Positions 5,103-62,500 of a DNA stretch of 64,000 nucleotides are shown piece by piece. A program made the position numbers and the translations under genes. The stretch is taken from assembly GCA_977030845.1 (NCBI GenBank), contig OZ365110.1:992001-1056000 (forward strand), in the 5' to 3' direction. The DNA comes from Fimbriosthenelais zetlandica (Eukaryota). The notes beneath the pieces were generated by a model. The model was given only the letters and a program-made list of their open reading frames with translations, did not search any database and was not told the DNA's origin. The stretch's first letter is position 1. Each line of letters begins with the position of its first letter.

Positions 5103-8100
5103 TTAAAGCATCTAAAATAAAAACATCCAAATATCTGCGCTTCAGGAAAGTGTCTGCATGAGGGGTGCGAGGTGAGAAAGATGGAGGGTGTGAACGAGTG
5201 AATGTGGGGTGAGCAAATAATGGAGGGGGTGTCCACAGTGACGGCCTAAAGGGGCAACAAGGGGCGTAATAGGCTCACATGGCTACTACATTATACAAGT
5301 TCCTCATTTCACTCTTATGACTTTAGAAAATCTCAAGATCATTATCTGGACCTATTTCCATTTTACATTTTTGGATATCATTTTCTTTGCGACCTTTCCA
5401 GTCTAAAATGACTCAAATTTCCATTCCATTCTGAATATTGCCCCGTTTTTTACTTTCCATCATGTGTTAACTTTCTCTCAGCCCAGTGTAGTAGGAACCA
5501 TGTGATTTACAAGCAGATAAATAAGTAGATTTCTGTGATAATAATAAAAGATCAGGAAGCATGGACATGTAGGCTACTGTATGAATGAGGGAGAGCGCGC
5601 TGAGGGGGCGGGGGCGGGGGAAGGGGCGGGGGAGAACAAAAGTGGCAAGTTGACTATCTGAATATGTATACATTTAACAGAAGTTAACAGGACGTCCCCA
5701 CACCACGAGCGCACCATTACAGCTTAATGAGAGATGATTTAAACTGACTTAACGTTAAAGCGATGATGTAATTATGTACAATGTATATGAATGATAGGTC
5801 AGCTGCCGAGTCCACCTCCATCCAATGTAGCGGGGTCAAGTCAGATAAAACATCCACAAAATAGGAAAAGGAATATTTCCGACACAAAAAAGAATATTTC
5901 GTGGACTGGTAGGCATTTCTTACTTCCACGTGAATTATGTTTAGTGCAAAGATGGTTAAATAGCAACTTTAGCCCCAGACAATATGCATTATTCTGATAA
6001 TTATTAATTCTCCCAAGCTTCCGATCCATGGGGCCAAAAAATGCGGTTTTAACGAATAATGCAAGATAAAAGAGAAAAGAAAATATAAAGAATAGCTCGA
6101 AATAGGCATGTATCCCCATAATAGGAGAAATAGTAATAATTTGATACCCTGCCATAGCTATAAGAATAGCAGCCACAACCCGCGTGACTGGCAGGGAAAC
6201 TGACTAGAACTCTTGACAGGGATGAAGCATGGACTCAGCTTGAAGCTAGCATTAAGTCTCACACCAGACATGGCTGAAGCCACTCACCTGTTTTACTGTA
6301 GCTTTGATGAATTCTTTCTTATGTGAGAGATCAAAATCAGGGTACTTGGCATAAACCTGAAAACAAAAATTACATTAAATGTATAATTCCAAGATCTTAC
6401 TTTTTAATTTAAAGATCACGATTCTGTGTACAAGAAGATCAATGATGGTCGCTTTAATTAGTTATAAATAAATAAATCATAAAAATAATTAAATTAAATT
6501 AAATTAATTGCACTTAAATCTCACCTGTTTGCACACGGTTTTCATGGTGACTTCCTCTAAGTTGGCGCCGTCCAAAATCTTCTTGACACTGTCTTTAATT
6601 TCATCATCCTGAGAAAGAGAGAACACAATAAGAAATATTAGAGCTTTAATTTTTAAAAATCCATCAGTAAATCAGAAATTTGTACTTAATTTAAAATAAA
6701 ATATCAATAAACATTAGAATGTTGTATAAGAGAATGACTTACCGTGGGTTCTTTCACTTTCTTTTTGCTCTTTTTTTCTTTTGGTTTCTCTTCTTCAGAG
6801 TCAGATGCGGATGATGCTGAAAAATAAAATATTACTTTATTATTTTATGCTCAGCTATGCTTAAAAATTACATATAATATGGACTCCGATGAGAGAATAT
6901 AATATTTATAAAGAATTTCAGTAATCCTCACCTTTTTTCTTCCGTGGGGTTTTCTTGGGGGCTTTTTTAGGCTCAGGCTTGGCCTTGGGCTCAGTTTTAG
7001 CCTTCTTCTTCTTCGGTTGTTCCTGGAAGAAAAGATTTAAAAACTAATGTACAAAGGAAGACAAGATTTAAAACTAATGTACAAAGGAAAACAAGATTTA
7101 AAACTTATTTACAAAGGAAAACAAGATTTAAAACTAATTTACAAAGGAAGACAAGATCAATGTACTAATGTACAAAGGAAGACAAGATTTAAAGCTAATG
7201 ACTTAGTAATCTACAAAGAATGTTTTCTCTCATTCTCGTCTCCCAGTGGACAATTTATGTTAGAGTTTTGTATAAATCATTTATAAATCTCTCACCTCCT
7301 CCTCGTCAGAATCTTCTGACTTCTTCTCTTCTGATTCCTCCTCTTCTTCTTCTTGTGATTCTTCCTCCTCTTCCTCGGACGCCTCCTCGTCGTTCTCTTC
7401 CGTCTCCTCGTTCTCTTCTTTCTTGGCTTTCTTTCCTTTCTTTGCTGTGGCTGTGGCACCTTTTGATTTTCTCTTCCCTTCTCCCTTTGATTTCCCTAAA
7501 AACATAAACAGAAAACGTTTAAATCACTTCCTATCTTCTCAGTCTATAAACCTAAACTTAAATTTAACAAACTAATTACTAATACAAATATAAACATTTT
7601 AATATTATATCTCTGACTAAGCATGGCTCTTTCTATTATGAAAAATCTACCTGCCATTGACCAAATTTAAATCTGATTTCACTTTCCAGTCCGAAGTATT
7701 TAACTTGCCCAATTAATGTTTCAATGAACACAGAATATTCACAAATTATTTCCCAACTATCGGGCAAGGGATGCTAGAGAACTACCTGCCTGCCAGAGTA
7801 ATTTGGCTAAATAAAACCTTATAAAGTCATGTATTGACTCACGTTTGCGTTTTTGAGGGACGGACTTGCCCGAGTCGACAGGTCTGATGAGGTAGTCGAG
7901 GATCCGGTTAACAATGGTCTCCTTAGATCCGCTACGTTCTAACGCTAACGTCTCACAGATAGGCTTCAACTGAGACTGGGTCATCCTGGAGACAGAGAGA
8001 AAGAGACAGATATTAAAATACAGAGGCTTCAACTGAGACTGGGTCATCCTGGAGATAGAGAGAGAGACAGACATTATAATACAGAGGCTTCAACTGAGAC

Positions 8101-14419: not shown

Positions 14420-17400
14420 ATGAATGCCATCATCTCGCTGTGTCACTTCTGTGAGCTGCACGGACCGAGTATTTTATTCTGTACCCAGGCCTTCCACACT
14501 CATGATCCTCAGCAGGTACTGGAGGCAGATTACGGGGGTCTGGATGACGGGGGGATTACGTCACTCCCTGATCAGAGAGATCTGAGATCACCTGGCAGCC
14601 TCGACACCCCCTCCACACCACAGTCTCTCTCATCATTCTCTAAAGTCTCAGACAACTGTGAGGTATGATTCCCAACTATTTAATTATGGGATATATACTC
14701 CTTTTGATTCATATACATGACCTACTCCAGTATTCAATTTGGTATCTTAAATTCTACTCAAAGTTCTGTGCGCTAATAACATTCATATAGGGTTAGATTC
14801 TATAATAATGACCAATATTAATTAATTTAATTTATCTGTATTTTTCTAGGCGTGTCAGAGTTTCCCTCTGGGTCAGCCAGGATTGATCAGTACTGATCAT
14901 GAAGCTAAAGTCAGCTATATCAGCTCCCAGCATCCTCACCACCAACAGGTGTTCTCTATGGTGAGACAGGCCTGCCTGAGGAGCCTCAGCTGTGAGGTGA
15001 GTGTACTATCACCCTCCCCCCCCACCCCCCTACACCCACCACCACCCCCACCCCATATATCACCCCTAGGCCCCACCCCCTCATCCCACTCCACAATCAG
15101 CAAAATTAATATCATAAAAACTCAGAGAGCTATTCATACAATAACTCAGAATTTTTGGGAGCCAAATTTGAGGTCAATTTCATTTGCGCGAGGTCCTATA
15201 TTTTATTATTTTATATTTATATTTTTATCACCAGGTGTGCCCTGGCCGTGAAGGACCTATATTTTTCGGTGACGATCATCGTGGTCATGTGTTCTCTCAC
15301 ACCTTCTTCGTGAAGGACGCTCAGGCTCGGGGCCTCCAGCGCTGGTACAGCATCCTGGTCGTCATGATGGATAAAATATTCCTGTTAAACTCGTGGCCAT
15401 TCCTGGTGGCGCAGACGAGGACTGTGATAGATAAACTACAAGATAAAGCCAAGACGGTGTATGACAGAGAGAACGCCAAGTGTCCACAGAGATCACATAG
15501 ACTCACCATGAGTGTGAATCCATCTAACTTCCTACAGCAGAGAGGGGGAGGAAACAAGCCAGCCAGGTGAGTGGTGGGTGGGGGGGAGGGGGGGGGGGAG
15601 GCAACAAGCCAGCCAGGTGAGTGGTGGGTGGGGGGGGGGGGGAGGTCACATAGACTCACCATGAGTGTGAATCCATCTAACTTCCTACAGCAGAGAGGAG
15701 GAGGAAACAAGCCAGCCAGGTGAGTGGTGGGTGGGGGGGGGGGGAGGTCACATAGACTCACCATGAGTGTGAATCCATCTAACTTCCTACAGCAGAGAGG
15801 AGGAGGAAACAAGCCAGCCAGGTGAGTGGTGGGGGGGGGGGGAGGGGGGGGGGGAGGCAACAAGCCAGCCAGGTGAGTGGTGGGGGGGGGGGGGTGTGGG
15901 GGGGGGGGGGGGGAGGCAACAAGCCAGCCCGGTGAGTGGTGGGGGGGGGGGGGGAGGTCACATAGACTCACCATGAGTGTGAATCCATCTAACTTCCTAC
16001 AGCAGAGAGGAGGAGGCAACAAGCCAGCCAGGTGAGTGGTGGGGGGGGGGGAGGGGGGGGGGGAGGCAACAAGCCAGCCAGGTGAGTGAGGGGGGGGGGG
16101 GGCTTGTGGAGATGGGTAGAAGAAAATTGGTTTTGACATTACGGGATCCCTGATTTCACTGAGATATTTAAGATTTTCAAGATTTTTAAGATTTCTGTTC
16201 ATTACAGGTCGCTGATAGAGCTGACAGATGATAAGATGGTTTTCTGTAAGTTACATCGTTTCTTCACGTGGATTCTCAAGGCGGGAGGGAGTCGTCTATC
16301 AGAGCGTCTACTGGAGGGACCGCCCACTGAGGACTCTATTATAGACTACGAGAAACAAGAAGGTAAAACACAGGCCTCACTAGATCTACTAAAGTAATTA
16401 TCAGCCATGAGAAGTTAAACTGACATTATAGGGTGGAGATTCCTGCCCCCAGAGTATTCCCAGTTCTGATTCTATGGAAGATTTAGATGAACAGATTCTT
16501 TCCTGGCTATATTTGATTAAAATATACAAATTTATACCTGGAGCAGATACACTGTTAAGTAGGCTACAAATTTACTAGAAAAATCATTATATGAGTAGAT
16601 CAATTTGTATCATACTTAGAGAGAAATCAAAATATATAATAAATCATTATCATACATACATGTAGATAGAAAAATGAATCTATATTATCATTGCCCTGGA
16701 TGTAAACTATATCATATCTATATCATCATTGTCTGACTATAAACTGTCTATGTCTGACTATAAACTGTCTATGTCTATGTCGGTAGAGACGGAGGAAGGG
16801 TTCGTTAAGATCTACAGCGTGAAGGATGTGATGGAGGAACGCGTGGAGGAGGGAGATGAGACGACACCTACCGGCCTGGAGGACGGGGGTCCACAGTTTA
16901 CATCTATACGACATCTACTGCGGGTAAGGCGTTAAAGGGGCTCTATCACTGATCAAAACTGAGCATTAAAGTGGCTCTATCACTGATCAAAACTGAGCAT
17001 TAAAGTGGCTCTATCACTGATCAAAACTGAGCATTAAAGCGGCTCTATCACTGATCAAAACTGAGCATTAAAGTGGCTCTATCACTGATCAAAACTGAGC
17101 ATTAAAGTGGCTCTATCACTGATCAATTAACAGTCTGAGTGTTGTGCATTAAAGTGATATCTTGAGGTAAATTTATAATTCATTTTTCTTTGCCTATAGA
17201 TCCTGGGTTACATGGAGTTTAATAAACTAACTCATCACGTGATCATTGGTAACCAGGTGATTATCCGCGGTAACGACCGAGGTCTGGTCCGCTCCCTCAT
17301 CGACAATCTCAAGGTCAGTGCTTGTCATAGACGGCGCTACATGAAGGTCTTATACAATTAAAGTCTCTTTCTTGAGATGACAGAAAGTGAGCTGACTGGA

Positions 17401-19362
17401 CAATAAACAATTATATAGTTAAGGAAATATGATATATTTAAACCTTGTTGTATTGTTACCTTGTTAAAGGTGTTGTTACCTTATTGTTGCAGGTGTTGTT
17501 ACCGCGTGGTTGCTGTCGAGCCATCTATTACAGCTCTCAGTACATTGACTCATGGCGGTGTAATTTTCTCGGCATGCCTCTCAACACGGAGCTGCCTAAA
17601 CATGCCTCTCTGTACGTGACTCTGGACATGAGGGACCCGCGGGATGACGCGGGGCGGGGACCGCCGGATGACGCGGGGCGGGACACGCGGGACCACGCGG
17701 GGCGGGACCACACCACCTCTATAGAGGACGGGGAGGACCCCGGCATGGAGGGAGCGGAGGCCAGCAAGTTTGATCCTGATAAAGACCCGCTACAGTTCTA
17801 CAGCTTCAGTGTCAACTCACCCATGTGTATGCCTGTCAAAGGTGGGTCTCTAACTCACTATAGTTCACTGATTTAGTGTCAACTCACCCATGTGTATGCC
17901 TGTTAAAGGTGAGTCTCTAACTCACTATAGTTCACTGATTTAGTGTCAACTCACCCATGTGTATGCCTGTTAAAGGTAAGTCTCTAACTCACTATAGTTC
18001 ACTGATTTAGTGTCAACTCACCCATGTGTATGCCTGTTAAAGGTAAGTCTCTAACTCACTATAGTTCACTGATTTAGTGTCAACTCACCCATGTGTATGC
18101 CTGTCAAAGGTGGGTCTCTAACTCACTATAGTTCACTGATTTAGTGTCAACTCACCCATGTGTATGCCTGTCAAAGGTGGGTCTCTAACTCACTATAGTT
18201 CACTGATTTAGTGTCAACTCACCCATGTGTATGCCTGTCAAAGGTGGGTCTCTAACTCACTATAGTTCACTGATTTAGTGTCAACTCACCCATGTGTATG
18301 CCTGTTAAAGGTAAGTCTCTAACTCACTATAGTTCACTGATTTAGTGTCAACTCACCCATGTGTATGCCTGTCAAAGGTGGGTCTCTAACTCACTATAGT
18401 TCACTGATTTAGTGTCAACTCACCCATGTGTATGCCTGTCAAAGGTGGGTCTCCACTACAGTCGGTTCACTCTAAGTTGATCAGAAACCACCATACATTT
18501 GAACTGTGGTTTCGGATCAACTTCGATTTGAACAGACATTTTGAACACTATAGTTCACTGATTTAGTGAACCGTTTAGTTTTCCTTTAGTGATTGCTGGA
18601 AATCGCAGTGTTATTGCTTAATAACTTGTCTGTGAAACTAAAAAAACTGAAGGACATATCTACTGTAATACAAGAGAGAACACCTATCTATTCCTCTTGC
18701 TTGTAAATTTTCAGTGCTAAGGCTTAGATAGGTTAACTGTACTGTTAAATGACAAGCATTGGTTGTGACTAGAAATATACTATCGCTCAGCATCGCTTGG
18801 GCAGATCGCCTCTGTGTGGGCCCGACATAACACCTATCACTTTCACTTTCAGCCCCCGCTGTTCTCTGCTCCATCGAGCAGTTCCTCCTGAACGAGCAGC
18901 TCACAGACAGCGTGGTGGACCAGTGTCTCATCTCTCTAAAGGAGGAGTGGATGAAGTGAGTATTCATTATTATATAACAATAAAATGGTAGAAATAAACT
19001 GTTTAAGTTTTAAACTCCTTGACTTTTCTGGTCAATGTGACAAGACAATTTTAACATCAAACGACTTCCACAAACCCCTACAGTCCTCCTTTCATTGATC
19101 TTCATTACATTTCATTTTATCACGGTAATCAAGAATCATCTACCTATCTACTTGTTTTATGTTTTTCAGTAAAGTGAAGGTGTTGTTTAAGTTCACTAAG
19201 GCTGGCGGCAGCAGATCAGATGAGGACACACGGCGTCTACTACAGGTGGTAGAGGCTAACGAGGAGGACAAGGCCGTGCTCAAATTCTGGATGACGGGAC
19301 TGAGTGTACAATACAGAAACCACATGCTCAGCTCAGCTATACACCAAGCTGTCAACAGCTGA
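14420..19362 (+). CDS. FLCN: Folliculin, 9 coding exons, about 590 aa
   Basis: Exons 14420-14662, 14850-14996, 15235-15566, 16208-16362, 16787-16923, 17200-17313, 17493-17841, 18853-18955, 19170-19362. Diagnostic [87 protein letters not shown]. Confidence 0.96.
15490..16095 (+). repeat. Array of FLCN exon 3 donor copies separated by G-runs
   Basis: CAAGCCAGCCAG|GTGAGT at 15567 (functional), 15617, 15720, 15822, 15873, 15932, 16032, 16082; three copies carry about 75 nt of exon. Confidence 0.93.
16933..17125. repeat. 34-bp array, about 6 copies, of a TTAA-anchored transposon-end motif
   Basis: ttaaag(t/c/g)ggctctatcactgatcaaaactgagca; same motif as the MITE terminus at 63346-63369 and the solo end at 41722-41741. 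Confidence 0.85.
17810..18455 (+). repeat. 67-bp array containing the FLCN exon 7 donor, 10 copies
   Basis: Donors at 17842 + n x 67 up to 18445; variants GTGGGT, GTGAGT, GTAAGT. Confidence 0.96.
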
Positions 19363-19500
19363 TAACAAGCTGTCAACAGCTGACACCAGGCTGTCAACAG
19401 CTGATACAGCCATACACCAAGCTGCCAACAGCTGTCAACAGCTTCCACAAGGCTGTCAACAGCTAACAACAAGCTGTCAACACCTGATGGCAGCTGACAG
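19340..19500 (+). repeat. Degenerate repeat spanning the FLCN stop codon
   Basis: caagctgtcaacagctga-like units from the last codons into the 3' UTR. Confidence 0.75.
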
Positions 19501-21509: not shown

Positions 21510-21523
21510 ATGAGCACATATTG

Positions 21524-23849
21524 TTATCGTTTACGGAACTGTAGCGTTTTGAGTAGCATGGAGGAGACGTAGGGCACGACGCGTCGACCCTTGTAGAAGG
21601 CGTCTGCGACTTTAGCTTTATATAGAGGGTCGTGAGCCACCTTGTCTGTGACCAGCGTCAGCAGGTCCTGAAGATCCATGGCGAACCCGTAATTCATGAT
21701 CACTTCATGTAAGGCGATGACGAACCATGATCCAACGTCACCAGTCTTAGCTGCTGAACGGCGGAACGAGTAGTAACCTGAAATTAAATCATGATGAAAA
21801 TATGGAAATATAGTGATTTACTTCTAAATTTGAGAAAACTGTACCGGTACAGTTAATATATTTATTCAAGCACAAGTTCAGTAAGTGGTGCACCAGGCCA
21901 GGGACACAAAGAACAATAGACATGATTCTATGTCTATGAAATAACTCATATTAAGGGGAACGTAATGGAATGAATGAATGAATGAATGAATGAATGAATG
22001 AATGAATGATTGAATGAATGAATGAATGAATAATGAATGGTGATTTAACGCCATGCCAGCTACTAAGGCTATATTCATGGCGAGAACTAACGAAATAGAA
22101 CCATTAATGTTGAATCATTAATCAATGTGGAAAGGGAAATGGCTTATGAGAGACTAATATGGTCCGGAACATGGTAAGGTAGTTAGCATTAAGACTCGAG
22201 AGGCAGGATTAAAGGAGGAGGATTAAGCCGAATTAGCTCGACTAATGGAGGAGTTACCATGGTAACAATGATCAAGGTCATTAAAGGTCAGAACAGTGGA
22301 CGATACAATGAGTACTACTAGTGGTCTTAATTATATCAGTTATAGCTCAATATGATGACATGTAAAGGTAGAAGACAAATAACGGAGCAGAGAAAAACAA
22401 AAATCTGTAAGGCAAAAGAAAATATTTCCAGGTTCTGGTCACTTCAAATTGCTAAGAGAAATTTCAGCACTTTTTGCTGCACAAATTTTGTAGCTAGAGT
22501 GAGGCCAGAGAAGATGACTGACCGGGCGGGGCGGAGTAAGCTATCAGGAAGTCCTTTTTGAGCGGTACGTCAGTGACGCGGCACGGTCCGGGGTCAGAAT
22601 GAGGCTTCTGTACGACGTAATTCTCACCGTCTGTCGTCATCACTTCATCCAGCATCTGACCACGACAAGCCTACAGTAGGGGAAGAGGATAGGTTATAAT
22701 TAGAATTACATGTATTTATGCCATCCCTCGTATTAATTGTGCTTGGTTCCTGATATCAGGAAGGTGGGGAATATTTATTCAACGGTATAGTGGATTTTCC
22801 GGGCCCTATATGATTATAAGCTTACAAACATGTAAGCCCTAAATCGGATTAAAATGTAGGCTCTATATAAGCTTACCAAAATGTAGGCGCAATATGAGCT
22901 TACCTACATGTAGGCCCTTTATAGGCTTACCAACATGTAAGCCCTATATATATATAAGCTTACCAACATGTAGGCCCAATATAGGCCTACATATATAGGC
23001 CTAGGCCTTATATAATACCTGAACCTGAAGCCTACCTGTATGAAGAATAGTTTGGGTTTTCCGGCCATGGTGGGACATTCACTGTCTGACAGCTCGTCCA
23101 TCAACCATTTAGTGAAGATGACTTCATCCTTAGCGTAGATGACGTCAGTCATGACGTCACGCTCCTTGTCAGAGTGACGTGAATGACGTGAGTGACGTGG
23201 GGTGTAGACGCGCTGTTTCTGGTCCAGCAGTTCCTGATCTCCGTGAGTGGAGAAGGCAAACGCCACACAACTGTCATCACTGTGGTCCTCAGACTTATCT
23301 ATAATAATAAATCTATATTTTAATATCTAAACAAACTTTTTTATCTGCCATAAAATCTGATTTCAAAACAGCTTTCCTACCCAATTTAGCTCCCTATAGA
23401 ATACGGGAATAAATACTCCACGGGTAGGAGAGAATGGAGGACACTATTATTTGAACCTGATAGCAACATCTGACATAAAATAAAACATATATCAGATATT
23501 AAATAAAGCGTAGAATGACATTAAGGACTCACATTTAAGCACTGTTTCCCAGATAAAGTTGGCTGTCTTGTCGACATGCGACTCCACTGTGAACCCAAGG
23601 TGGTTGAAAGCCTTGTAATAATACGTGAGGTCATTCTCTGATCCCTTCCTCTCCTTTAACTGCGTCCGTTCATCAAAATGTTTATTAACGAAGATGAAGG
23701 CCTTGCCGACCTTCTTTGACATGTCGTACTCGTGGGTTACTGTGTCTGAGGGCTGGACAGACAGGCTGAACATGTGATCAGTGACGTCATGGAGGGCGCT
23801 ACCCACAGACGGGGGACCACAGTCAGGAGTATCCTCCCCAGACAGTCTC
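21524..23849 (-). CDS. Caspase, effector (caspase-3/7-like), 5' end unresolved
   Basis: Exons 23533-23849, 23036-23298, 22523-22670, 21524-21777 join in phase. They give KAFIFVN..F, RKGSENDL, catalytic STHG, GKPKLFFIQACRG, DFLIAYSAPPGYYSFRR, GSWFV and SMLLKTLQF. An upstream exon with a donor at 25418-25423 exists, but its ATG frame (25487, phase 1) does not match the phase-2 acceptor. Confidence 0.9.
21967..22085. mobile_element. (GAAT)n microsatellite plus short inverted repeat, possible HINE/Helentron-like end
   Basis: (gaat)n followed by tttaaCGCCATgccagctactaaggctatattcATGGCG. The resemblance to mollusc microsatellite-anchored non-autonomous elements is from memory and unverified. Confidence 0.35.
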
Positions 23850-29125: not shown

Positions 29126-34231
<5,106 letters not shown>

Positions 34232-37303: not shown

Positions 37304-37570
37304 ATCAGAGATTAGGCGAGCTTTACTCGCCTAGATCAGAGATTAGGTGAGCTTTACTCGCGTAGATCAGAGATTAGGCGAGCTTTACTCGCCTAGATCA
37401 GAGATTAGGTGACCTGTACTCGCCTAGATCAGAGATTAGGCGAGCTTTACTCGCCTAGATCAGAGATTAGGTGACCTGTACTCGCCCAGATCAGAGATTA
37501 GGCGAGCTTTACTCGCCCAGATCAGAGATTAGGCGAGCTTTACTCGCCCAGATCAGAGATTAGGTGACCT
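37292..37570 (+). repeat. 31-bp palindromic repeat, about 9 copies, spanning the paralogue A stop codon
   Basis: actcgccTAGatcagagattaggcgagcttt; ctcgccta/taggcgag inverted pair. Confidence 0.93.
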
Positions 37571-43590: not shown

Positions 43591-46500
43591 TCACACCTTT
43601 TGTCGCGACTTTTTGGTGGGTATATCTTTGCCTTTATATTTAAAGTAATCCTCGCCGATGTCTATAGTGTTACCGTTGTCAAACTTGCCGGTCCTCATGT
43701 CAGGCGTCATGGTTGACATGATCTTCCACTCTACCTGGCAGGTAATGATGATATGACTGCCCACCTGGCCTTCAGGTACGTGGGTGTGGAAGAACTTGGC
43801 GCTGTCCATGTATCCACGGCGGGCCAGGAACTTGTGGAGTTTGAGGTGAGTGGGGGAGTACATCACCAGGTGGGTGGGTAACGTAGACCGGTTTTTAGGG
43901 TAACGTTTAGCCATCCACTTTACAGGGTCCTGGAAAAACTGATCCGCTTCATCAACATAGTCAGCCTCACCGGCGAGGTTAGGTTCACACGTCAAAAACT
44001 CCATACTGACGTTACGGTGAAGATAGCTGAAAATAAACACAGTAACATTAAACTCCATACTGACGTTACGGTGAAGATAACTGAAAATAAACACAGTAAC
44101 ATTAAACTCCATACTGACGTTACGATGAAGATAACTGAAAATAAACACAGTCACATTAAACTCCATACTGACGTTACGATGAAGATAGCTGAAAATAAAT
44201 ACAGTCACATTAAACTCCATACTGACGTTACGGTGAAGATAGCTGAAAATAAATACAGTAATGTTAAACTCCATACTGACGTTACGGTGAAGATAGCTGA
44301 AAATAAATACAGTAATGTTAAACTCCATACTGACGTTACGGTGAAGATAGCTGAAAATAAACACAGTAATGTTAAACTCCATACTGACGTTACGGTGAAG
44401 ATAACTGAAAATAAATACAGTCACATTAAACTCCATACTGACGTTACGGTGAAGATAGCTGAAAATAAACACAGTAACGTTAAACTCCATACTGACGTTA
44501 CGGTGAAGATAGCTGAAAATAAACACAGTCACATTAAACTCCATACTGACGTTACGGTGAAGATAGCTGAAAATAAACACAGTAACATTAAACTCCATAC
44601 TGACGTTACGGTGAAGATAGCTGAAAATAAACACAGTAATGTTAAACTCCATACTGACGTTACGGTGAAGATAGCTGAAAATAAATACAGTAACGTTAAA
44701 CTCCATACTGACGTTACGGTGAAGGTAACTGAAAATAAATACAGTAACGTTAAACTCCATACTGACGTTACGGTGAAGGTAACTGAAAATAAACACAGTA
44801 ACGTTAAACTCCATACTGACGTTACGGTGAAGATAGCTGAAAATAAATACAGTAACGTTAAACTCCATACTGACGTTACGGTGAAGATAGCTGAAAATAA
44901 ACACAGTAACATTAAACTCCATACTGACGTTACGGTGAAGATAGCTGAAAATAAACACAGTAACATTAAACTCCATGCTGACGTTACGGTGAAGATAGCT
45001 GAAAATAAACACAGTAACATTAAACTCCATACTGACGTTACGGTGAAGATAGCTGAAAATAAATACATAAAATTAGAGGAGTTTAGGTATTTTAAGTGTT
45101 AATATTTTCAACTTTTTAATATCTATTTTAAAAGCCAGTCCATGAAGAAGACAGAAATCTGCCGAAATCAACACAAAATAGAACCAGTTTCTAGTGTAGA
45201 ATTCTGGTGTCCAATCAATTATAATTTGTTTAAATATTTTTTATATAATTTTACCTGTAGTAGGGCGTGGCGTGGCAGGGCGTTAGGAACAAGACGTTCA
45301 TCAGTCGTACATCTGTTTTGTATGTGTCGTCGTGGAGTCGTTTCATCACCTCTATACTGCCGCGCTGGTGGATCAGACTCGTGTACATGGCGAGAGGCAG
45401 GTTAGTAACGATCAGTGTTACCATCACAAACCAACGTCTGTAACAATAAAACAAGATAAAACAGGTAACCATGGCGAGAGGCAGGTTAGTAACGATCAGC
45501 GTTACCATCACAAACCAACGTCTGTAACAATAAAACATGATAAAACAGGTAACCATGGCGAGAGGCAGGTTAGTAACGATCAGTGTTACTATCACAAACC
45601 AACGTCTGTAACAATAAAACATGATAAAACAGGTAACCATGGCGAGAGGCAGGTTAGTAACGATCAGTGTTACCATGACAAACCAACGTCTGTAACAGTA
45701 AAACATCATAAAACAAGATAGAAAAAGGTAACCATGGCGAGAGGCAGGTTAGTAACGATCAACGTTACCATGACAAACCAACGTCTGTAACAATAAAACA
45801 TGATAAAACAGGTAACCATGGCGAGAGGCAGGTTAGTAACGATCAACGTTACTATCACAAACCAACGTCTGTAACAATAAAACATGATAAAACAGGTAAC
45901 CATGGCGAGAGGCTGGTTAGTAACGATCAACGTTACTATCACAAACCAACGTCTGTAACAATAAAACATGATAAAACAGGTAACCATGGCGAGAGGCAGG
46001 TTAGTAACGATCAACGTTACTATCACAAACCAACGTCTGTAACAATAAAACATGATAAAACAGGTAACCATGGCGAGCGGCAGGTTAGTAACGATCAACG
46101 TTACTATCACAAACCAACGTCTGTAACATAAGAGTATGAAGGGGGAAGTTATTATAGTAAGACAGGGGATAGGGAGAAACTTATTATTATAGCGCCACCA
46201 CTGAACTGTACTATGTCCCACCTAGTGTCAATACAGAGGGAGAGAGGGGGAGACTCTGGGAGAAACTTGTAGAGAAGGGGAGAGTGAGAAACTTATTACA
46301 GAAAGAGAGTGGGAGAGGGAGGAACTTATTAGAGAGAGAGGGAGGGAGAGGGCAACAGAACCGACCAAGGATTGAGATGATGGTCGCCCCTAGAGAGATA
46401 ATGCCCCGTGTGATGCAATATGATCGACAACAAAATAACAGATAAAGAATAAAGTGAATTGTACTGACCGAGCAGACCGGTTAGTGGTCGGTGTTTGCTG

Positions 46501-49500
46501 CTGGTTGACCGGTGAATCTCGCCCACTGACCGGTGAATCGTTGACCGGTGAATCGTTGACCGGTGAATCATTGACCAGTACCTCGTCGTGACAGACAGTA
46601 TACAGGTACTGACCACAGACGTGCATACAGAGCGGGAGGACGGGGAACAGGAACCGGAACTCCTTATGTTCTAATAAACTGAAAAAAAAACATGACTTAT
46701 TAACACGAAACATCGCATGTAAATCAGGCCCGTCAAAGATAAACAACTTCCAAAAGAAGGCTGTCTAGTGCTCCGTCTTCTGATTTATTGAAGGACCTCA
46801 TGATGACCTAATAAGGTGCACTGGGATTTAAGCTTTTAAGATTTAAGAGTACAAAGTTTGGGTTTCTGTAACAAAGGCATTTTATTGACACTATCTTAAC
46901 TTAATTTTTCTATAATCCATAAGGCATAGAACCAACATCCAAGTCGTATTGCCGCAAGAATTGTAGGGTATTGTGTCTGCAAATCCCTCTCGGGGCATAC
47001 ACCCACTAATCCAACATCTCAGTCAGTTCTATAGATCTATAAATGTTAAATATTTACACCTACCTGTATATGAAGACGGTCCAGGCTATGAGCCCCAGTA
47101 TGACTCTATGTGTGTAGGGGGGTGGTGGTGGTGTGTGTGTGTGTGGGGGGGGGGGGGGTATTATATATATTATATATTCCACCTACGTATATATATGAAG
47201 ACGGTCCAGGCTATGAGCCCCAGTATGACTCTATGTGTGTAGGGGGGTGGGGGGGGTTGTCGGGGGGGGGGGGGGGGGGGGTGTATTATATATATTATAT
47301 ATTCCACCTACCTGTATATAAAGACGGTCCAGGCTATGAGCCCCAGTATGACTCTATGTGTGTAGGAGGGGTGGGGGGGGTTGTCGGGGGGGGGGGGGTA
47401 TTATATATTATATATTCCACCTACCTGTAGATAAAGACGGTCCAGGCTATGAGCCCCAGTATGACTCTATGTGTGTAGGAGGGTGGGGGTGGTGGGGGGT
47501 GGGGGGGGGGGTGTATTATATATATTATATATTCCACCTACCTGTATATAAAGACGGTCCAGGCTATGAGCCCCAGTATGACTCTGTGAGACCCGTTCCT
47601 CGCACCCAGTATAAAGGGGAATAGATGAGTCCCCAGTATAACAGCCAGCCCCTGACTGAGGTACCAGTACCAGGGATGACTGCCATAAAACGCGCCGATA
47701 TTAGATAAAACGTTCAGCTCCAGGAAATTATAATGTACGTTCACCCAACGACCGTAACAAAGCTTATCAACGAGGGACGAGAAGCCCAGTACCATCACCC
47801 TACAAAAAACATCACAAAATATAAATAATCAACGAGGGAGGAGAAGCCGAGCACCATCACCCTGTAAAAAAAATATAAATTTTATATATGTTTTACTTAC
47901 AAACATTCATTTAAGTTTTTAAACTGATGGGTATCTAGTATTTTATAGACAGGATCCCATCATTCCATCAAAACCAAATTGCCTCATGTCTCCTAATGAG
48001 TTTAAAAAAAAATTTAGGATGATTATCTAGACCTAAATCTATTTAAACTATCTACAATTAAGCTCAAAAATGAACTATACGAAACTATTGAAACTAAGAC
48101 AGTAATATGGTCCAATCTAATTCCCTGATGTTCCTTTACTGGGACGTTTCACAATATTTCCCTGATGTTGTAGGATAGCTGGTAACCTTGACTATTTAAT
48201 ATAATATAATAAATGAGTGACACTCACCCCACACCCCCGTACAGCCGCACGTTAGACCAGACGTTGTGACGTTGTCTCCAGACGTGCCATAAACATAGAG
48301 GTGACCACAAGATGGCGGCCGTGGGGCGGACGACGACGGCCAGGGCGACGAGGGCGACGTACCGACCACTCCACCTCCTGATACAGAGAAAAATAGATAC
48401 ATATTATACATATATAACGACGGCCAGGGCGACGAGGGCGACGTACCGACCACTCCACCTCCTGATACAGAGAAAAATAGATACATATTATACATATATA
48501 ACGACGGCCAGGGCGACGAGGGCGACGTACCGACCACTCCACCTCCTGATACAGAGAAAAATAGATACATATTATACATATATAACGACGGCCAGGGCGA
48601 CGAGGGCGACGTACCGACCACTCCACCTCCTGATACAGAGAAAAATAGATACATATTATACATATATAACGACGGCCAGGGCGACGAGGGCGACGTACCG
48701 ACCACTCCACCTCCTGATACAGAGAAAAATAGATACATATTATACATATATAACGACGGCCAGGGCGACGAGGGCGACGTACCGACCACTCCACCTCCTG
48801 ATACAGAGAAAAATAGATACATATTATACATATATAACGACGGCCAGGGCGACGAGGGCGACGTACCGACCACTCCACCGCCTGATACAGAGAAAAATAG
48901 ATACATATTATACATATATAACGACGGCCAGGGCGACGAGGGCGACGTACCGACCACTCCACCTCCTGATACAGAGAAAAATAGATACATATTATACATA
49001 TATAACGACGGCCAGGGCGACGAGGGCGACGTACCGACCACTCCACCTCCTGATACAGAGACAAATAGATACATATTATACATATATAACGACGGCCAGG
49101 GCGACGAGGGCGACGTACCGACCACTCCACCTCCTGATACAGAGAAAAATAGATACATATTATACATATATAACGACGGCCAGGGCGACGAGGGCGACGT
49201 ACCGACCACTCCACCGCCTGATACAGAGAAAAATAGATACATATTATACATATATAACGACGGCCAGGGCGACGAGGGCGACGTACCGACCACTCCACCT
49301 CCTGATACAGAGAAAAATAGATACATATTATACATATATAACGACGGCCAGGGCCACGAGGGCGACGTACCGACCACTCCACCTCCTGATACAGAGACAA
49401 ATAGATACATATTATACATATATAACGACGGCCAGGGCCACGAGGGCGACGTACCGACCACTCCACCTCCTGATACAGAGAAAAATAGATACATATTATA

Positions 49501-52500
49501 CAATATAACGACGGCCAGGGCGACGAGGGCGACGTACCGACCACTCCACCTCCTGATACAGAGACAAATAGATACATATTATACAATATAACGACGGCCA
49601 GGGCGACGAGGGCGACGTACCGACCACTCCACCTCCTGATACAGAGAAAAATAGATACATATTATACATATATAACGACGGCCAGGGCGACGAGGGCGAC
49701 GTACCGACCACTCCACCTCCTGATACAGAGAAAAATAGATACATATTATACATATATAACGACGGCCAGGGCCACGAGGGCGACGTACCGACCACTCCAC
49801 CTCCTGATACAGAGAAAAATAGATACATATTATACATATATAACGACGGCCAGGGCCACGAGGGCGACGTACCGACCACTCCACCTCCTGATACAGAGAA
49901 AAATAGATACATATTATACATATATAACGACGGCCAGGGCGACGAGGGCGACGTACCGACCACTCCACCTCCTGATACAGAGAAAAATAGATACATATTA
50001 TACATATATAACGACGGCCAGGGCGACGAGGGCGACGTACCGACCACTCCACCTCCTGATACAGAGAAAAATAGATACATATTATACATATATAACGACG
50101 GCCAGGGCGACGAGGGCGACGTACCGACCACTCCACCTCCTGATACAGAGACAAATAGATACATATTATACAATATAACGACGGCCAGGGCGACGAGGGC
50201 GACGTACCGACCACTCCACCTCCTGATACAGAGAAAAATAGATACATATTATACATATATAACGACGGCCAGGGCGACGAGGGCGACGTACCGACCACTC
50301 CACCTCCTGATACAGAGAAAAATAGATACATATTATACATATATAACGACGGCCAGGGCCACGAGGGCGACGTACCGACCACTCCACCTCCTGATACAGA
50401 GACAAATAGATACATATTATACATATATAACGACGGCCAGGGCGACGAGGGCGACGTACCGACCACTCCACCTCCTGATACAGAGAAAAATAGATACATA
50501 TTATACATATATAACGACGGCCAGGGCGACGAGGGCGACGTACCGACCACTCCACCTCCTGATACAGAGAAAAATAGATACATATTATACATATATAACG
50601 ACGGCCAGGGCGACGAGGGCGACGTACCGACCACTCCACCTCCTGATACAGAGACAAATAGATACATATTATACATATATAACGACGGCCAGGGCCACGA
50701 GGGCGACGTACCGACCACTCCACCTCCTGATACAGAGAAAAATAGATACATATTATACATATATAACGACGGCCAGGGCGACGAGGGCGACGTACCGACC
50801 ACTCCACCTCCTGATACAGAGAAAAATAGATACATATTATACATATATAACGACGGCCAGGGCGACGAGGGCGACGTACCGACCACTCCACCTCCTGATA
50901 CAGAGAAAAATAGATACATATTATACATATATAACGACGGCCAGGGCGACGAGGGCGACGTACCGACCACTCCACCTCCTGATACAGAGAAAAATAGATA
51001 CATATTATACATATATAACGACGGCCAGGGCGACGAGGGCGACGTACCGACCACTCCACCTCCTGATACAGAGAAAAATAGATACATATTATACATATAT
51101 AACGACGGCCAGGGCGACGAGGGCGACGTACCGACCACTCCACCTCCTGATACAGAGACAAATAGATACATATTATACATATATAACGACGGCCAGGGCC
51201 ACGAGGGCGACGTACCGACCACTCCACCTCCTGATACAGAGAAAAATAGATACATATTATACATATATAACGACGGCCAGGGCGACGAGGGCGACGTACC
51301 GACCACTCCACCTCCTGATACAGAGAAAAATAGATACATATTATACATATATAACGACGGCCAGGGCGACGAGGGCGACGTACCGACCACTCCACCTCCT
51401 GATACAGAGAAAAATAGATACATATTATACATATATAACGACGGCCAGGGCGACGAGGGCGACGTACCGACCACTCCACCTCCTGATACAGAGAAAAATA
51501 GATACATATTATACATATATAACGACGGCCAGGGCGACGAGGGCGACGTACCGACCACTCCACCTCCTGATACAGAGAAAAATAGATACATATTATACAT
51601 ATATAACGACGGCCAGGGCGACGAGGGCGACGTACCGACCACTCCACCTCCTGATACAGAGAAAAATAGATACATATTATACATATATAACGACGGCCAG
51701 GGCGACGAGGGCGACGTACCGACCACTCCACCTCCTGATACAGAGAAAAATAGATACATATTATACATATATAACGACGGCCAGGGCGACGAGGGCGACG
51801 TACCGACCACTCCACCTCCTGATACCTCTAGATACATATTACATATTATAAAACGAGTTGAGTAGTCTTGAGTAAAAACATTCCTCATTCTTTCGCTATC
51901 TCTTTCTATACAGGGGTAGAGAAATAATTTTTTAGTCCACTGGTCAGGACCAGTAGGGGTAAAAATTCTACTGGTCCGCCTATCAGAAGCAACTGGCCAC
52001 AATATATGACCCTAGTTTCTTTAATATTACACCTTTTTGACATCATTCATATTTACACACAGCATGCAAAAATATAAAATATATTGTCTGAAATTTGTCA
52101 TTACTGTTTCACACAAAAAAAAATGAAACCTAACCCCCGACCACAAGCCTTATAATGGAATAGAGCAGATTGTTTGGCTACTGGCGTACTGTTAATTACT
52201 ATCCCGACATTATCACATGCTGGACATCGGGCTAGTAAGGTTATTTTTTTACAAGACCAAAACAAATTATTACTGGTCCTTGTCCTCGGACCAGTGGATT
52301 TCTCTACCCCTGCTATATCTTGGATAATATTGACCAGGTGCGCCCTTTTCGGACCCAAACGTTCACAATCTTTCTCTAGATACAATTTATAGAATAACTA
52401 GTTACTAGTAATACCCAAGCCCGAGGGGAGAACAGACGACTGTATTCAAAACCATGAACATTTGTATTGATTTCATATCTGCCAGAAAAACTGGTTTTAA

Positions 52501-54529
52501 AGTCGTCGTTTCCCATCGATTTGGGCAGGAACAGGACAATCCACTGAGAATGGAATGGAAGCCTAATAATATTTGAAGCCGACAGAAATATCAGATATGA
52601 AATGAAGATCTTACGCCTCAATTAATTTGGTATAATCTATGTTTTTCTAGGACTAAATAATTAAATATACTTCTGACCTATGAGTACCGGGCCAGGGGTA
52701 GTAGTATAAAGCTATAGTCGTGAGCGCCGTCTCCGTGCTGTTGGTTAACGTCCTGGTCGCCGCGTAGAATGTGAACCATGACGTCATCTGACAGAATAAC
52801 GTCCATAACGCCACACGCTGGTTATGTAACCTCCATGAAAACTTAAACAAGTAGAAATCAGCGGCGGCGGCGAGGACGGCCTGGAGAACGCGTGGTAACT
52901 TAATCTGAAACATAGAATATAAACATAATGAGAACTGAAAAATCAGAAAAAAAAGAGAAAATTATGAAAAATTGATGCACACTGACTAATAAACGATATA
53001 ATGAATATTGAAGGAAGTTTTTGGTTTATCTAGGTTTGGTGCCAACAAAAGATTTTAATCTAAATTCCCTGATTGTTCCCTGATATATTTTGTTGTGATT
53101 TTGTCTCAATTTTGACAGATTTTACAATACCAGTTACTAATTCTGCAGGAACTGATTTCCTGCAGTGTCTTTCTGAACTTCCTCACTCGGCCAAACTGCT
53201 ATCTCTGAATAAAGAGCGTACCAGTAAGATCCTGTAGTCGAGGTGAAGCAGGTGTAGAAGTTTATACAGACCCGCGAAGACGGAAGGGTAGACGTAGCTT
53301 CTGATACCGTGTTTCCACTCCCACGTCAGGTGACCATACCTACAACCAGTCAGTCATAAAGAGGGGTCGTGTTAGTGAGAGTTTATCAATGTATTAAAAG
53401 GTAATAATAAATTGGAAATTTTTTAAATTGAACTGATAACCTTTCAGAAGTCATAATTCCTTATGAGACAAATATAATACAATATCAAAAATATAAATGA
53501 AATAACAAATATAACAGTATATTCAGTGCATTATCAACTTTACACCTCGCATAACAGCCATGTTATTCCTGGTACAATTTCTACTATCGGTATTTCATGT
53601 TAAAATATATTGACTAATGTGGTCGCCTCGCATAAAGGCCAGAAACACTTTAGTTTTAGCTATGACACCTACCCGTACGCCATCTGGTGAGCGACCTCCA
53701 GTGACTGCCAGTACTCGTCAGGCACGAAGCTCGTCTGAATGAGCAGAGCATTTAGAACACGGAACGCGAGGAGACCCAGAAATAAAGTCCGCTCAGAGGC
53801 GAGGAGCAGGCGCAGAATGGCCGGACCAGACTGAAAAATAACATAGATGAGAAATAATGTACGCTCAGAGGCGAGGAGTAGGCGCAGAATGGCCGGACCA
53901 GACTGAAAAATAATAGATAAAGATGAGAAATAAAGTACGCTCAGAGGCGAGGAGGAGGCGCAGAATGGCCGGACCAGACTGAAAAATAATAGATAAAGAT
54001 GAGAAATAAAGTACGCTCAGAGGCGAGGAGGAGGCGCAGAATGGCCGGACCAGACTGAAAAATAATATTACTTTTTGAATGATCCAACCGTAACAATTGA
54101 CTGTGTTTTAACTCTTTTAAAGATTTGGAAGAATTTTCTGACAATTAAATTTCCAGTAAATCAATAATTTTGGGAAAACATCTTACAGTATAATCAACTG
54201 GTGAGATTTTATTAGACCAGATATATTAGGCCTATATTTAATTATTTTAGGCCTATATTAAATGAAAATAGATTAGAACTCAATTCAAGCATACATTTAT
54301 ACCAACACCCTCCCCCTATTAGGTAAAGGGGGGGGGGGGGGGGGGGGGGCTGGCTACATCAGTACTGACAAATATTTACCGTGATTTTGTCCATGCTGGG
54401 TTCCGCCTCCTCCTGACTGTCCCCCTCCTCCTCTGTCGACCTCCCCCGCCCCTGTAAGATCCCCATGTGTCGCCTCCGCCGTATGGTGGCAGCACTCTTA
54501 CTCTCCTTCACCGCTGACAGCTGAGACAT
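43591..54529 (-). CDS. PIGB: GPI mannosyltransferase 3, 9 coding exons, about 629 aa
   Basis: Exons 54380-54529, 53673-53830, 53222-53339, 52678-52904, 48228-48377, 47542-47799, 46469-46678, 45255-45437, 43591-44026, in phase. [82 protein letters not shown] possible extra in-frame first exon 54951-54974 encodes MSDAEAVK. Confidence 0.95.
43997..45066 (-). repeat. 54-bp array containing the PIGB last-exon acceptor, 20 copies
   Basis: tttattttcag|CTATCTTCACCGTAACGTCAGTATGGAGTTT; acceptors at 44027 + n x 54 up to 45053. Confidence 0.97.
45387..46127 (-). repeat. 84-bp array containing the PIGB exon 8 acceptor, 9 copies
   Basis: ttattgttacag|ACGTTGGTTTGTGATGGTAAC...GCCATG; one 95-bp unit. Confidence 0.95.
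47058..47590 (-). repeat. Array of 5 PIGB exon 6 donor copies separated by G/C-runs
   Basis: AGAGTCATACTGGGGCTCATAGCCTGGACCGTCTTTATATACAG|GTAGGT with exon end at 47542 (functional), 47425, 47312, about 47187, 47064. Confidence 0.92.
48334..51826 (-). repeat. 84-bp array containing the PIGB exon 5 acceptor, about 42 copies
   Basis: tttttctctgtatcag|GAGGTGGAGTGGTCGGTACGTCGCCCTCGTCGCCCTGGCCGTCGT. First acceptor 48378, last 51819; the distance 3441 equals 41 units with three 83-bp variants. Confidence 0.97.
51911..52312. mobile_element. MITE, 402 bp, perfect 15-bp terminal inverted repeats
   Basis: CAGGGGTAGAGAAAT at 51911 and ATTTCTCTACCCCTG ending 52312; subterminal ggaccagt/actggtcc motifs; CTATA on both flanks. 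Confidence 0.8.
53782..54066 (-). repeat. 72/76-bp array containing the PIGB exon 2 acceptor, 4 copies
   Basis: tatttttcag|TCTGGTCCGGCCATTCTGCGC at 53830 (functional), 53902, 53978, 54054. Confidence 0.93.
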
Positions 54530-59586: not shown

Positions 59587-62500
59587 ATGCCGGAGAACGC
59601 GTGTACGCGTGCATTACGCCCGTCTAACTTCCTCCTCCACCATCACCATCCTATACTCTTCGTCACCTGTCAGGTAAAAACCTTTATAAATTATTGTAAA
59701 TCTTTGTTTTTACCAATAATGGCGCATCACTTGTACATGGCACATGGATCATGACTGGGGGAAGTCCAATACCCCGCTCAGAGAACTACTAGAACATGAA
59801 CAAATCAATTTATCATTTTACTAAGTTTAAAATGCCCCGAGGTTTTTGAGGGAATTCAATATAACTTTACAACATTATTATAATATATTTGTCTTATTAT
59901 GAGGAGAACATGGCAGTAGGGAACTCCTAGATCCAATCATTCTTTTCTTTTCCAATAATCTAATGACATTCACAAACCTGCAAGCCTATACCAAAGACCC
60001 AGATCTAAGACTTAATGTATTTACTGATTCATTGATATTCATGTCTCATACAGTCAAACATTAGAGTAAACTGTATTATAACTGTGTTAATACAGTAAAC
60101 CCTGGTATAATGGTATAATCTAGGTAAACCCTGGTATAATCTAGGTAACCCACAACGTCTGGACTCCCACTCACAGGCTTAGACGTAGAGAAAGCTCATG
60201 GGAATATTATAGTTCCTTCTTAAAAATTAAAAAAATTAAATGGGTCTCGCTTAGACCCAAAGCAGTCTACTTTTCACAGAAACCTTTTTAATATTACTTT
60301 CATAGAGACCATTCCTTTAAAGGGCAAAATTAATTTTTAAATTTAAAGTTTTAATAATGCCGTACTGAGGTTACTTGAGAGACACACCCTAAACCTGCCC
60401 CCCAGACCCAGTAAGTCAAGGTAAACACAGCGCTCGCCCCCCGACCCCCCGACCCGGGGCTTGTAGAATCATGTCAGGGAGGTTTAGCTTCTGGGGCGGT
60501 GGCGGGTGTGAGTCAATACGCGCGTTATGTTCTATATTCCTAATAATCCTACCTTATACTTATATTACCCTCTCATGTCCCTATACCCCGTACATACCCC
60601 CCTATATCTATACACACAACACCCTCTCATCCCCCCTATACCACCCTCTTCTACACACATTCTATATGTTCTCATTTTCACGCTCCAGTGACCATACATA
60701 AGATATTAGTTTTAGTTTCAGGGGTTCCTTAAACAGGTAAGCAAGCCTGGGAGCTCCAAACTCCACGAATTATAAACATCATTAGGCCCTATTGACCATT
60801 CTTAGATCTTACAATAAAAATAATTTATCCAAAGAGTTTCTTAAAGTGAGATTTAGTTTGAAACACTACTGTGCTGAAGGTAATTAATGTGTCTCAATGA
60901 CAAATATGTACCAGTGTAGGACTTAATTTAAGTGATATAGTCGCTTTAATGACATGTTTCTATGTTACAGTGGGGCTGGCCACGTCTACTCTACGTCATC
61001 TACCGTACCGTTATCGCAGCCTACTTCATGGTGATATAGTCGCTTTAATAACCCATGTTTCTATGTTACAGTGGGGGTGGCCACGTTTGCTGTACGTGAT
61101 ATAGTCGCTTTAATGACCTGTTATATGTTACAGTGGGGCTGGCCACGCTTGCTGTACGTGATATAGTCGCTTTAATGACTCATGTTATATGATACAGTGG
61201 GGCTGGCCGCGTCTACTCTACGTCATCTACCGTACCGTTATCGCAGCCTACTTCACCACGTGGATCATCCTGTCTGGTACCATCAGTCCTCACCCCGTCA
61301 TCTCACAGAGGATTAAATGGTTCATCTACCTCACAAACTGGACGTACTTCCTACTGACGGCTAACTGTATCATACTGGCTGCTACAGCATCATACCGGTA
61401 CCTGACAGACCGGCGGGCAGTCAGCTACCCAGGTTAGACATTCATTATCATTCATTAACATTCATACTGACTGTTAACTATCATATTGGCTATACCAGGT
61501 CAGTGAACTTACAGTCCAGCTCAAGGGTTGATTATGCTCCTTAATAATGTCAAGGCGAAGCCGAGAGGTTATTAACATTGTTGTCAGTAAATATCAAACC
61601 CCATTCATTGATATTAAGCACAAATTAATAATCCTGGCGGGAATCATATATATGGCATGTATTGCAGAGATTATAATATCTCCTAGAATCGTACTTAAGA
61701 TATCACAGCTGTAGGGGGACTTTTTCAAGGCCTTCCTCGTTCCATTTAACATTTTAATTAAGATATGACGAATGTAAGGTCCTTGATTCATTATATGATA
61801 CATATATAATGCCCTTGTTTCATTATATGTCCTTGTTTCAGATAACTCTAATGAGGAGTCAGACTTGCCGTGGTACCTCAAGGTACAGTGGGTCATCTAT
61901 AACGTGGCCTCGGCCGGCTCGCTGGCTGTCAGTGTGGGCTACTGGGGCCTGCTATGGCGACGTGAGTAGACCTTATAAATCCACTCTTATAATACTCTAA
62001 ATGTAGTGTACCCCCAACATCTGACCAAAACCGACCTCCCCCTTAAACTGACAATGTCTGTCTTATCCTAGTTTCCCTTCTATTCCTAAATTAACTCTGA
62101 CGCTCCCCAACAAGACTCATGCCATCTCTATCTCATCTAAATTCGGGTAATATATAATATATCAAACAATCGCTTATTACTTTAAATGATCCCAACTCAT
62201 CTAAATTCCAAGAAACCAAGGTAGGCCTATGTCCGACCATTTGTTGAAGTTGCAAATAATGAGACATTTTTAATAATTAAACATTATAATAATTTAACTA
62301 TTATTATTATTTTGCAGCTGGGGTTGACGTGAACGCTATCGGTATGAACACACACGCCATCAACTCCTTCTACGTGCTGGCAGACCTCTTTATCATGGCC
62401 ATGCCTCTCCGCCTCCTCCACTTCTGGTTCCCTCTCCTGTATGGTCTTCTCTACATCATATTCACCCTCATCTACCAGGCCGCGGGGGGCACGGACCCCG

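Follow-up and report, generated by a model that had tools for sequence, protein, structure and literature searches.

Six neighboring genes with duplicated exon edges

We analyzed a 64,000-nt stretch of the Fimbriosthenelais zetlandica genome (contig OZ365110.1 of assembly GCA_977030845.1, positions 992,001 to 1,056,000; hereafter the window), in which the edges of exons, together with their splice sites, occur as tandem copies in the adjoining introns. The window is a gene-dense metazoan region with zero N, and its minisatellite load is unusually high (82 Tandem Repeats Finder rows). Genes were called from stop-to-stop open reading frames (ORFs), Pfam hits, and the mapping of homologues. The duplications affect six neighboring genes: on the minus strand DEK (SAP and DEK_C domains), a caspase-like gene (Peptidase_C14), and PIGB (Glyco_transf_22), which is colinear with full-length homologues, and on the plus strand FLCN (Folliculin domain), IQANK1 (IQ motif and ankyrin repeats), and the rolling-stone-like gene rost (Rost domain). 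The reading frame of PIGB is supported by Pfam and by colinear tblastn matches of homologues, and the other frames by Pfam. The best PIGB homologues match at 50-72% and come from assorted invertebrates and birds, with a per-exon identity of at most about 72%.

Exon-edge duplications that include the splice site were identified as 15 arrays or single copies spread over these genes, ten of the acceptor type and five of the donor type, with copy numbers from 1 to 41. Each unit comprises the splice site, 7-94 nt of adjoining exon, and 19-40 nt of adjoining intron. Unit alignments show one terminal unit per array to be continuous with the body of the exon, and the remaining units to be truncated at a novel exon-to-intron junction. 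At the aligned boundary, AG is kept in 105/105 internal acceptor copies and GT in 31/31 internal donor copies, 136 internal units in all. Unit lengths and junctions are haphazard, and the host genes are unrelated housekeeping genes. Tandem or mutually exclusive alternative exons were rejected as an explanation, since the copies carry a single exon edge that then joins intron sequence. As a kind of element the arrays are already known, from the "mirage" minisatellites of amphioxus that they match, a term that, to our knowledge, has been used in cephalochordates only.

Synonymous bias of the exon parts

Differences between the internal units and the functional exons lie almost exclusively at synonymous sites. 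Copies were located by their splice boundary and aligned outward from it up to the next unit, and distinct differences from the functional exon were classed in the exon frame. Curation by hand removed the tail of one DEK copy (7926-7939), which over-extended past the junction with 7 mismatches in 18 nt, merged two apparent substitutions in a copy of the caspase-like gene into one 4-nt insertion, and assigned two others, in a copy of the PIGB 113-125-bp donor array, to a complex indel; direct reading of the oldest DEK copy contributed a further non-synonymous change, CCT>GCT. The exon parts of the 136 internal units thus hold 44 distinct substitutions, of which 39 are synonymous and 5 non-synonymous, along with at least 3 indel events. 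The initial annotation of this DNA had claimed such a near-exclusive synonymous pattern from a hand count of about 44 synonymous variants, 7 non-synonymous variants, and 2 indels. The formal count upholds the claim, and it comes near the earlier 44:7 if the relic copies of IQANK1, counted apart from the main 44, are added with their 2 synonymous and 2 non-synonymous changes. The codon examples that had been listed for PIGB, rost, DEK, and FLCN, and GAA/GAG for IQANK1, were all located in the sequence; GCC/GCT had been placed in IQANK1 but lies in the array of the caspase-like gene (23795).

The bias is highly significant. Over the 660 covered positions, with transitions and CpG sites each weighted from 1 to 10, the synonymous fraction expected by chance is 0.24-0.36, and the probability of 39 or more synonymous changes among 44 ranges from 2e-19 to 4e-13 across these weights. 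When the same substitutions are read in frames +1 and +2 as a wrong-frame control, only 2/44 and 4/44 are synonymous. Codon positions 3, 1, and 2 hold 36, 6, and 2 substitutions, respectively. Four of the six first-position changes are synonymous changes of Arg or Leu codons (AGG/CGG twice, CTG/TTG, and CTA/TTA), which argues for a filter at the amino-acid level and not for a third-position mutation effect. The ratio of synonymous to non-synonymous changes is 30:5 for variants segregating among internal units, 16:3 for transversions alone, 27:4 without any C>T or G>A (a crude removal of CpG transitions), and 35:4 for those lying over 3 nt away from the duplication junction; nine variants are fixed in all internal copies and hence cannot be polarized. 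Because the bias persists in these restricted counts and is lost in the wrong frames, we rejected mutation spectrum, third-position bias, and CpG bias as its source.

Among the units, variants per site amount to 0.25 at synonymous sites, 0.008 at non-synonymous sites, and 0.16 in the intron part, and mean pairwise diversity is 0.118, 0.003, and 0.067, respectively. The dN/dS of the exon parts is about 0.04, and the excess of silent differences described in the initial annotation stands both in the wrong-frame control and with CpG and transition bias modeled. Judged from the sequence, this diversity profile is that of a selected coding region.

Arrays at individual exon borders

Several arrays lie along PIGB (all on the minus strand). 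At the acceptor of its last exon (43996-45075; functional exon start 44026), 19 internal units of 54 bp carry four exon-part variants, all of them synonymous (AGC/AGT, TAT/TAC, CAC/CAT, and AGT/AGC). The exon frame stays open across all 20 units, giving a 493-aa stop-free ORF (43594-45072), and three of the four intron-part variants would be silent too, although this is not significant (P about 0.06). Upstream acceptors of this array may occasionally be used in frame. A second acceptor array (45386-46128; functional exon start 45437) consists of eight units of 84 bp with four synonymous variants and two non-synonymous ones (ATG>ATA and CTG>CAG), and an intron-part variant, TTG>ATG, would also be non-synonymous. 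A genuinely translated minisatellite lies inside a PIGB exon (46527-46576), where a 15-bp coding repeat encodes, in frame, three to four copies of NDSPV with a silent AAT/AAC difference. Four donor units of 113-125 bp with poly-C/G spacers (47038-47588; functional exon end 47542) carry ATA>ATC, TTT>TTC, and CAC>CAT plus one complex indel.

Farther along PIGB, a single upstream acceptor copy (47828-47888, within 47767-47888; functional exon start 47799) differs by GTA>GTG, CTG>CTC, and TCG>TCC. The array with the most copies is an acceptor array of 41 units of 84 bp (48333-51850; functional exon start 48377), each made of 39 nt of intron and 45 nt of exon, with AGG>CGG and GTC>GTG as its variants and an in-frame TAA within the intron part. 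Three acceptor units of 76 bp (53778-54090; functional exon start 53830) carry CTG>CTC, CTG>CTA, CGG>CGT, and ACT>ACA. PIGB homologues run colinear across the array-bearing junctions, with no gap for inserted repeats, which indirectly supports undisturbed splicing at the authentic sites.

Three borders of DEK (minus strand) are affected. The acceptor of the SAP exon (7961-8235; functional exon start 7985) has units of about 61 bp, made of about 38 nt of intron end and 25-45 nt of exon start, and its three proximal copies are free of exon-part variants. A distal copy of this unit (9110-9175) carries ACC>ACT and TCT>TCA. It is parted from the proximal copies by a 20-bp array of 44 copies (8224-9107), an array expanded within an array. 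At a donor site (9908-10319; functional exon end 10307), eight units of 48 bp have CCT>CCC in every copy. A further acceptor array (10434-11420; functional exon start 10453) comprises 20 copies, with units of 40 and 53 bp arranged in a higher-order pattern of 253 bp; its oldest, distal copy (at about 11401) bears GAG>CAG, CCT>GCT, and a 3-nt insertion. From 10434 to 11219 each 253-bp period holds a 53-bp unit and then five units of 40 bp, and the periods repeat at 100% identity, which points to recent multi-unit duplications.

Both FLCN arrays are of the donor type (plus strand). One (15489-16102; functional exon end 15566) has long units of about 102 bp, short units of about 50-59 bp, and poly-G spacers, and carries AGA>AGG, GGG>GGA, GGA>GGC, and AGG>CGG. 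The other (17808-18453; functional exon end 17841) consists of nine 67-bp units, four of which have GTC>GTT. Its functional 5' splice site is GTGGGT, and four internal units (17842-18350) have GTGAGT or GTAAGT, linked to the GTT variant; these are nearer the consensus, so the decoy sites look stronger than the authentic one. Runs of 12-20 G (C runs on the plus strand at PIGB) form the spacers of the FLCN 102-bp units (15597-16057, plus strand) and the PIGB 113/125-bp units (47038-47585, minus strand), and it is possible that they mark slippage-prone or G-quadruplex-prone sequence at the duplication junctions.

The caspase-like gene has four acceptor copies (23756-24516, minus strand; functional exon start 23849) in units of about 139-199 bp. 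Their synonymous changes are CCC>CCG, GTG>GTA, GCC>GCT, and GAT>GAC; GAC>GGC is non-synonymous, and one 4-nt insertion was identified. A 15-bp minisatellite (CTGTCTGTCTATAGC-like) is nested in every unit (23866-24278, minus strand) and causes the unit length to range from about 139 to 199 bp.

In IQANK1 (plus strand) two old acceptor relics of about 75-80% identity (29883-30040; functional exon start near 30162) supply the changes counted apart, including the non-synonymous GCG>ACC and TTC>TTG. Its donor array (30299-30530; functional exon end 30337) contains 43-bp units and one full copy with GAA>GAG. The 43-bp units (30376-30461) are internally deleted versions of the 71-bp exon-edge unit that retain the exonic GACGGC and GAG but lack the intervening 30 nt. 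An acceptor array of two 47-bp copies (31110-31241; functional exon start 31217) has no variant in its exon part. In the acceptor array of rost (60932-61255, plus strand; functional exon start 61198), the exon part is 58 nt long in one copy and 24 nt in the other two, and the six nucleotide changes are all synonymous (GGC/GGG, CCG/CCA, CGT/CGC, CTA/TTG, and CTC/CTG).

The window is likewise full of arrays from position 1 to 7400, such as a 19-bp array of 38 copies (3172-3895) and a 23-bp array of 32 copies (4239-4968). A paralogous tandem gene pair (35019-37300 and 38371-40470, plus strand; 70-86% DNA identity) encodes a Cys-rich (CCPCCPCC), membrane-like product. Just past an ORF end lies a 31-bp array of 8.7 copies (37295-37564, plus strand) with a palindromic unit (CTCGCCTA...TAGGCGAG). 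Searches with a rost exon found no candidate relative, and the 178-aa rost ORF gave a single match at 51%. A related contig, from GCA_013332975.1, contains 19-bp repeats resembling 5' splice sites and no informative exon-edge array, and an ESM Atlas search with an FLCN exon returned only noise.

Probable exchange with the expressed unit

Frequent exchange between homologues, combined with selection at the expressed unit, is the probable explanation of the bias. A mirage minisatellite is a tandem duplication of an exon edge with its splice site, of which the terminal unit, joined to the exon body, would be the expressed one. The untranslated internal units would stay in one recombining array with it. 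Out-of-register crossing-over or gene conversion, chiefly between the two homologues, could then shift sequence both ways: expressed exon-edge alleles would be pushed into the array, and internal units, whole or in part, would enter the expressed position, where selection on the protein would purge non-synonymous and frame-breaking variants. Provided that such exchange outpaces point mutation by far, and that most differences between the exon alleles of the species are silent, an array should resemble, in its units, a population sample of functional exon alleles. Such a sample is predicted to be rich in synonymous variation and nearly devoid of non-synonymous variation, and to keep its AG or GT. 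Constraint is further predicted to weaken as arrays grow larger and in relics that are isolated or diverged. The internal units behave as if nearly their whole coalescent history had passed under protein-level selection. The direction and rate of the exchange, and its inter-homologue nature, are what we infer from these patterns.

Within-unit recombinants lend support to frequent exchange at the sequence level and are an indirect sign of turnover in the arrays. Four-gamete violations occur between sites only 6-21 nt apart within units, in 8/15 site pairs of the PIGB 54-bp array and 4/6 site pairs of the eight-unit 84-bp array. Copies that are old, isolated, diverged, or distal carry non-synonymous changes and indels, as seen in the oldest DEK copy and the IQANK1 relics.

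The feasibility of such a process was addressed with a scaled Wright-Fisher toy model, in which arrays comprised about 4-15 units, each with 10 silent and 30 selected sites, and only the terminal unit was exposed to selection. These simulations were noisy single replicates, which show feasibility and the required regime and are no fit to the data. At a low ratio of exchange to mutation the internal units were unconstrained, so the model needs very fast exchange, at least 1e4-1e5 times the per-site mutation rate. With homologue exchange at 2.5e4-1e5 times the per-site mutation rate, the ratio of non-synonymous to synonymous variation (N/S) in internal units was 0.08-0.3, dN/dS between internal and functional units was 0.04-0.18, and internal synonymous diversity was close to the level of functional alleles. 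Exchange restricted to sisters gave tiny synonymous diversity with N/S of 0.9-1.0, and runs without selection gave N/S near 1 (about 0.9-1.2 over the sister-only and no-selection runs).

This architecture is identical to that known from amphioxus, where mirages have been reported for Adh3, globins, TnC, and PGBD5, with normal splicing and concerted evolution within clusters (PMC3087553; PMC3902484). Mirage length there differs between haplotypes (6 versus 3 units), and somatic instability at Adh3 is cited (PMC3087553). The two systems share units made of a splice site with its exon and intron edges, at 5' or 3' borders and from tens to about 160 bp long, a terminal unit continuous with the exon, and concerted evolution in the cluster. 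What differs is the striking density found here, with 15 arrays or copies in six neighboring genes. The synonymous bias of exon parts is unmentioned in PMC3087553 and PMC3902484, the two papers compared (the original 2002 description of mirages lies outside this comparison), and it appears to be a previously unreported property.

Published data from Branchiostoma floridae bear on it nonetheless. We read by hand the alignment of the globin gene BflGb6 (Additional file 4 of PMC3087553), whose machine-read table repeats some columns. In the duplicated part, five sites distinguish the two functional exon-2 alleles, all of them synonymous (AAA/AAG, GAT/GAC, GAG/GAA, GTT/GTC, and CTG/CTC). In both haplotypes the internal units hold these exon alleles in mixed combinations, and AAG, the exon allele of haplotype 2, is present in all internal units of haplotype 1. 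The unit variants are roughly 15 synonymous to 7 non-synonymous, and the non-synonymous changes cluster, with one frameshift, in the boundary units (PMC3087553).

Other systems share parts of the pattern. The 37-bp variable number tandem repeat (VNTR) in intron 7 of human F7 is of the donor type, its first element spans the exon 7/IVS7 boundary, and of the 5' splice sites present in every unit the exon-proximal one is used (PMC1557585). It differs in being a single locus in a low-diversity species. We know of no analysis of synonymous variants in this VNTR. In the silent cassettes of chicken pseudo-V genes, trypanosome VSG, Neisseria pilS, and Borrelia vls, as in mirages, partial non-expressed copies adjoin an expressed site with which they exchange sequence, and selection reaches them indirectly; those cassettes, however, diversify a protein through dedicated directional conversion, whereas here the variants are silent and the exchange is best explained as ordinary unequal recombination. 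In rDNA and histone arrays under purifying selection (Ohta/Nagylaki theory), unequal crossing-over and conversion spread and mix variants and selection shapes the whole array, but all members are expressed there, whereas here a single terminal, partial unit is expressed and the constraint on the rest would be second-hand.

Several alternatives were weighed against inter-homologue exchange. Purely intrachromosomal exchange (sister-chromatid slippage or unequal exchange), in which germline or somatic contractions expose internal units and no alleles are captured, would produce within-unit recombinants and retained splice sites equally well, and the somatic instability cited for an amphioxus mirage (PMC3087553) is in its favor. 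We consider it unlikely, given that sister-only simulations yielded very low synonymous diversity and no bias, against the observed 0.118, and that the published BflGb6 units share alleles across both haplotypes. Direct selection on translated internal units, whether in-frame arrays are read through or internal splice sites are used, draws on the 54-bp and the eight-unit 84-bp arrays of PIGB, whose periods are divisible by 3 and which are open in the exon frame, on the ORF across 20 units, and on the mostly silent, though not significant, intron-part variants of the 54-bp array. Yet in 13 of the 15 arrays the period is not divisible by 3 or the unit holds an in-frame stop (for example, the 76-bp PIGB array, rost, the 67-bp FLCN array, and the 41-unit array with its TAA), and the bias is unchanged in them; translation is therefore not the general cause. 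Since the PIGB homologue alignment also leaves no room for repeats at array-bearing junctions, and the TTG>ATG change in the intron part of the eight-unit array is non-synonymous, we regard this account as extremely improbable. It was one of three mechanisms offered in the initial annotation; the other two, capture from functional alleles and exchange with the exon, are the best supported and, since the sequence is one haplotype only, not separable from each other.

The absence of any selection is just as hard to credit. It would require very young copies with changes on the lineage of the functional exon, or else an error of mutation spectrum, assembly, or counting, and some of the nine unpolarizable variants may indeed be changes of the exon itself. 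Against it stand the 35 variants that segregate among internal units and the restricted and wrong-frame counts given above. A "fossil record" of past exon states was rejected on related grounds: a copy of age t would gather neutral changes at all sites, so that neutral aging predicts about 60% non-synonymous changes, compared with the 11% observed. A haplotype-merging artefact was likewise rejected, as it would not give truncated copies with novel junctions or a frame-specific bias. A dedicated cassette or repair-template system, in which internal units serve as cis donors for programmed copying into the exon edge, fits donors that are non-expressed, intact, and adjacent and that keep splice signals and coding sense. 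We nevertheless hold it highly improbable: with 39 of 44 variants silent no protein diversity is made, the arrays occupy housekeeping genes with no relation to one another, the units follow no rule in length or junction (7-94 nt of exon), relics decay, the window showed no machinery or signal that would go with such a system, and passive exchange suffices. There is a slim chance that the arrays are functional cis templates in a broader sense, with units maintained to supply homology for repairing or replacing the exon edge in germline or soma (after breaks in fragile DNA at the splice junction, for instance). They would then be an inbuilt backup or archive of alleles and not a passive by-product of unequal recombination. 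The term "silent-cassette or allele-archive system", proposed at the outset, overreaches, since 39 of 44 variants leave the protein unchanged and relic copies decay; the pattern is therefore what would be expected of concerted evolution that proceeds passively while selection acts on a single expressed unit.

Some observations weigh against frequent exchange between homologues with selection at the expressed unit. The sequence comes from one haplotype of one individual, and the explanation presumes high polymorphism and a large population on the model of amphioxus. At about 0.03-0.04, the observed ratio lies below every simulated value, and one intermediate simulation run was a noisy outlier (N/S of 4.7 at lambda 0.1). 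Terminal units of arrays are usually the least homogenized, which opposes easy exchange with an expressed unit. The 24-nt rost units (61031-61157, plus strand) are silently changed in five of eight codons, including the double change CTA>TTG, alongside an adjoining intron part only about 10% different, a combination that simple allele capture is not predicted to yield. On sequence grounds, the exon part of these units looks older than their intron part, or of other origin.

In practice, open codon-like arrays such as the PIGB 54-bp array invite false exon calls in gene prediction, and reads from internal units can pass for exonic single-nucleotide polymorphisms. The arrays also touch on the old idea that boundary duplications are seeds of new introns. 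If the proposed exchange with the expressed unit holds, mirages would be a natural experiment in which untranslated intronic DNA bears the footprint of coding selection (dN/dS about 0.04) purely through recombination with one expressed unit. They would offer a direct measure of the rate at which units exchange with the gene and between homologues, and would demonstrate second-hand purifying selection on non-coding copies. Such exchange would also explain how mirages are tolerated at dozens of exon borders without wrecking the genes that carry them.

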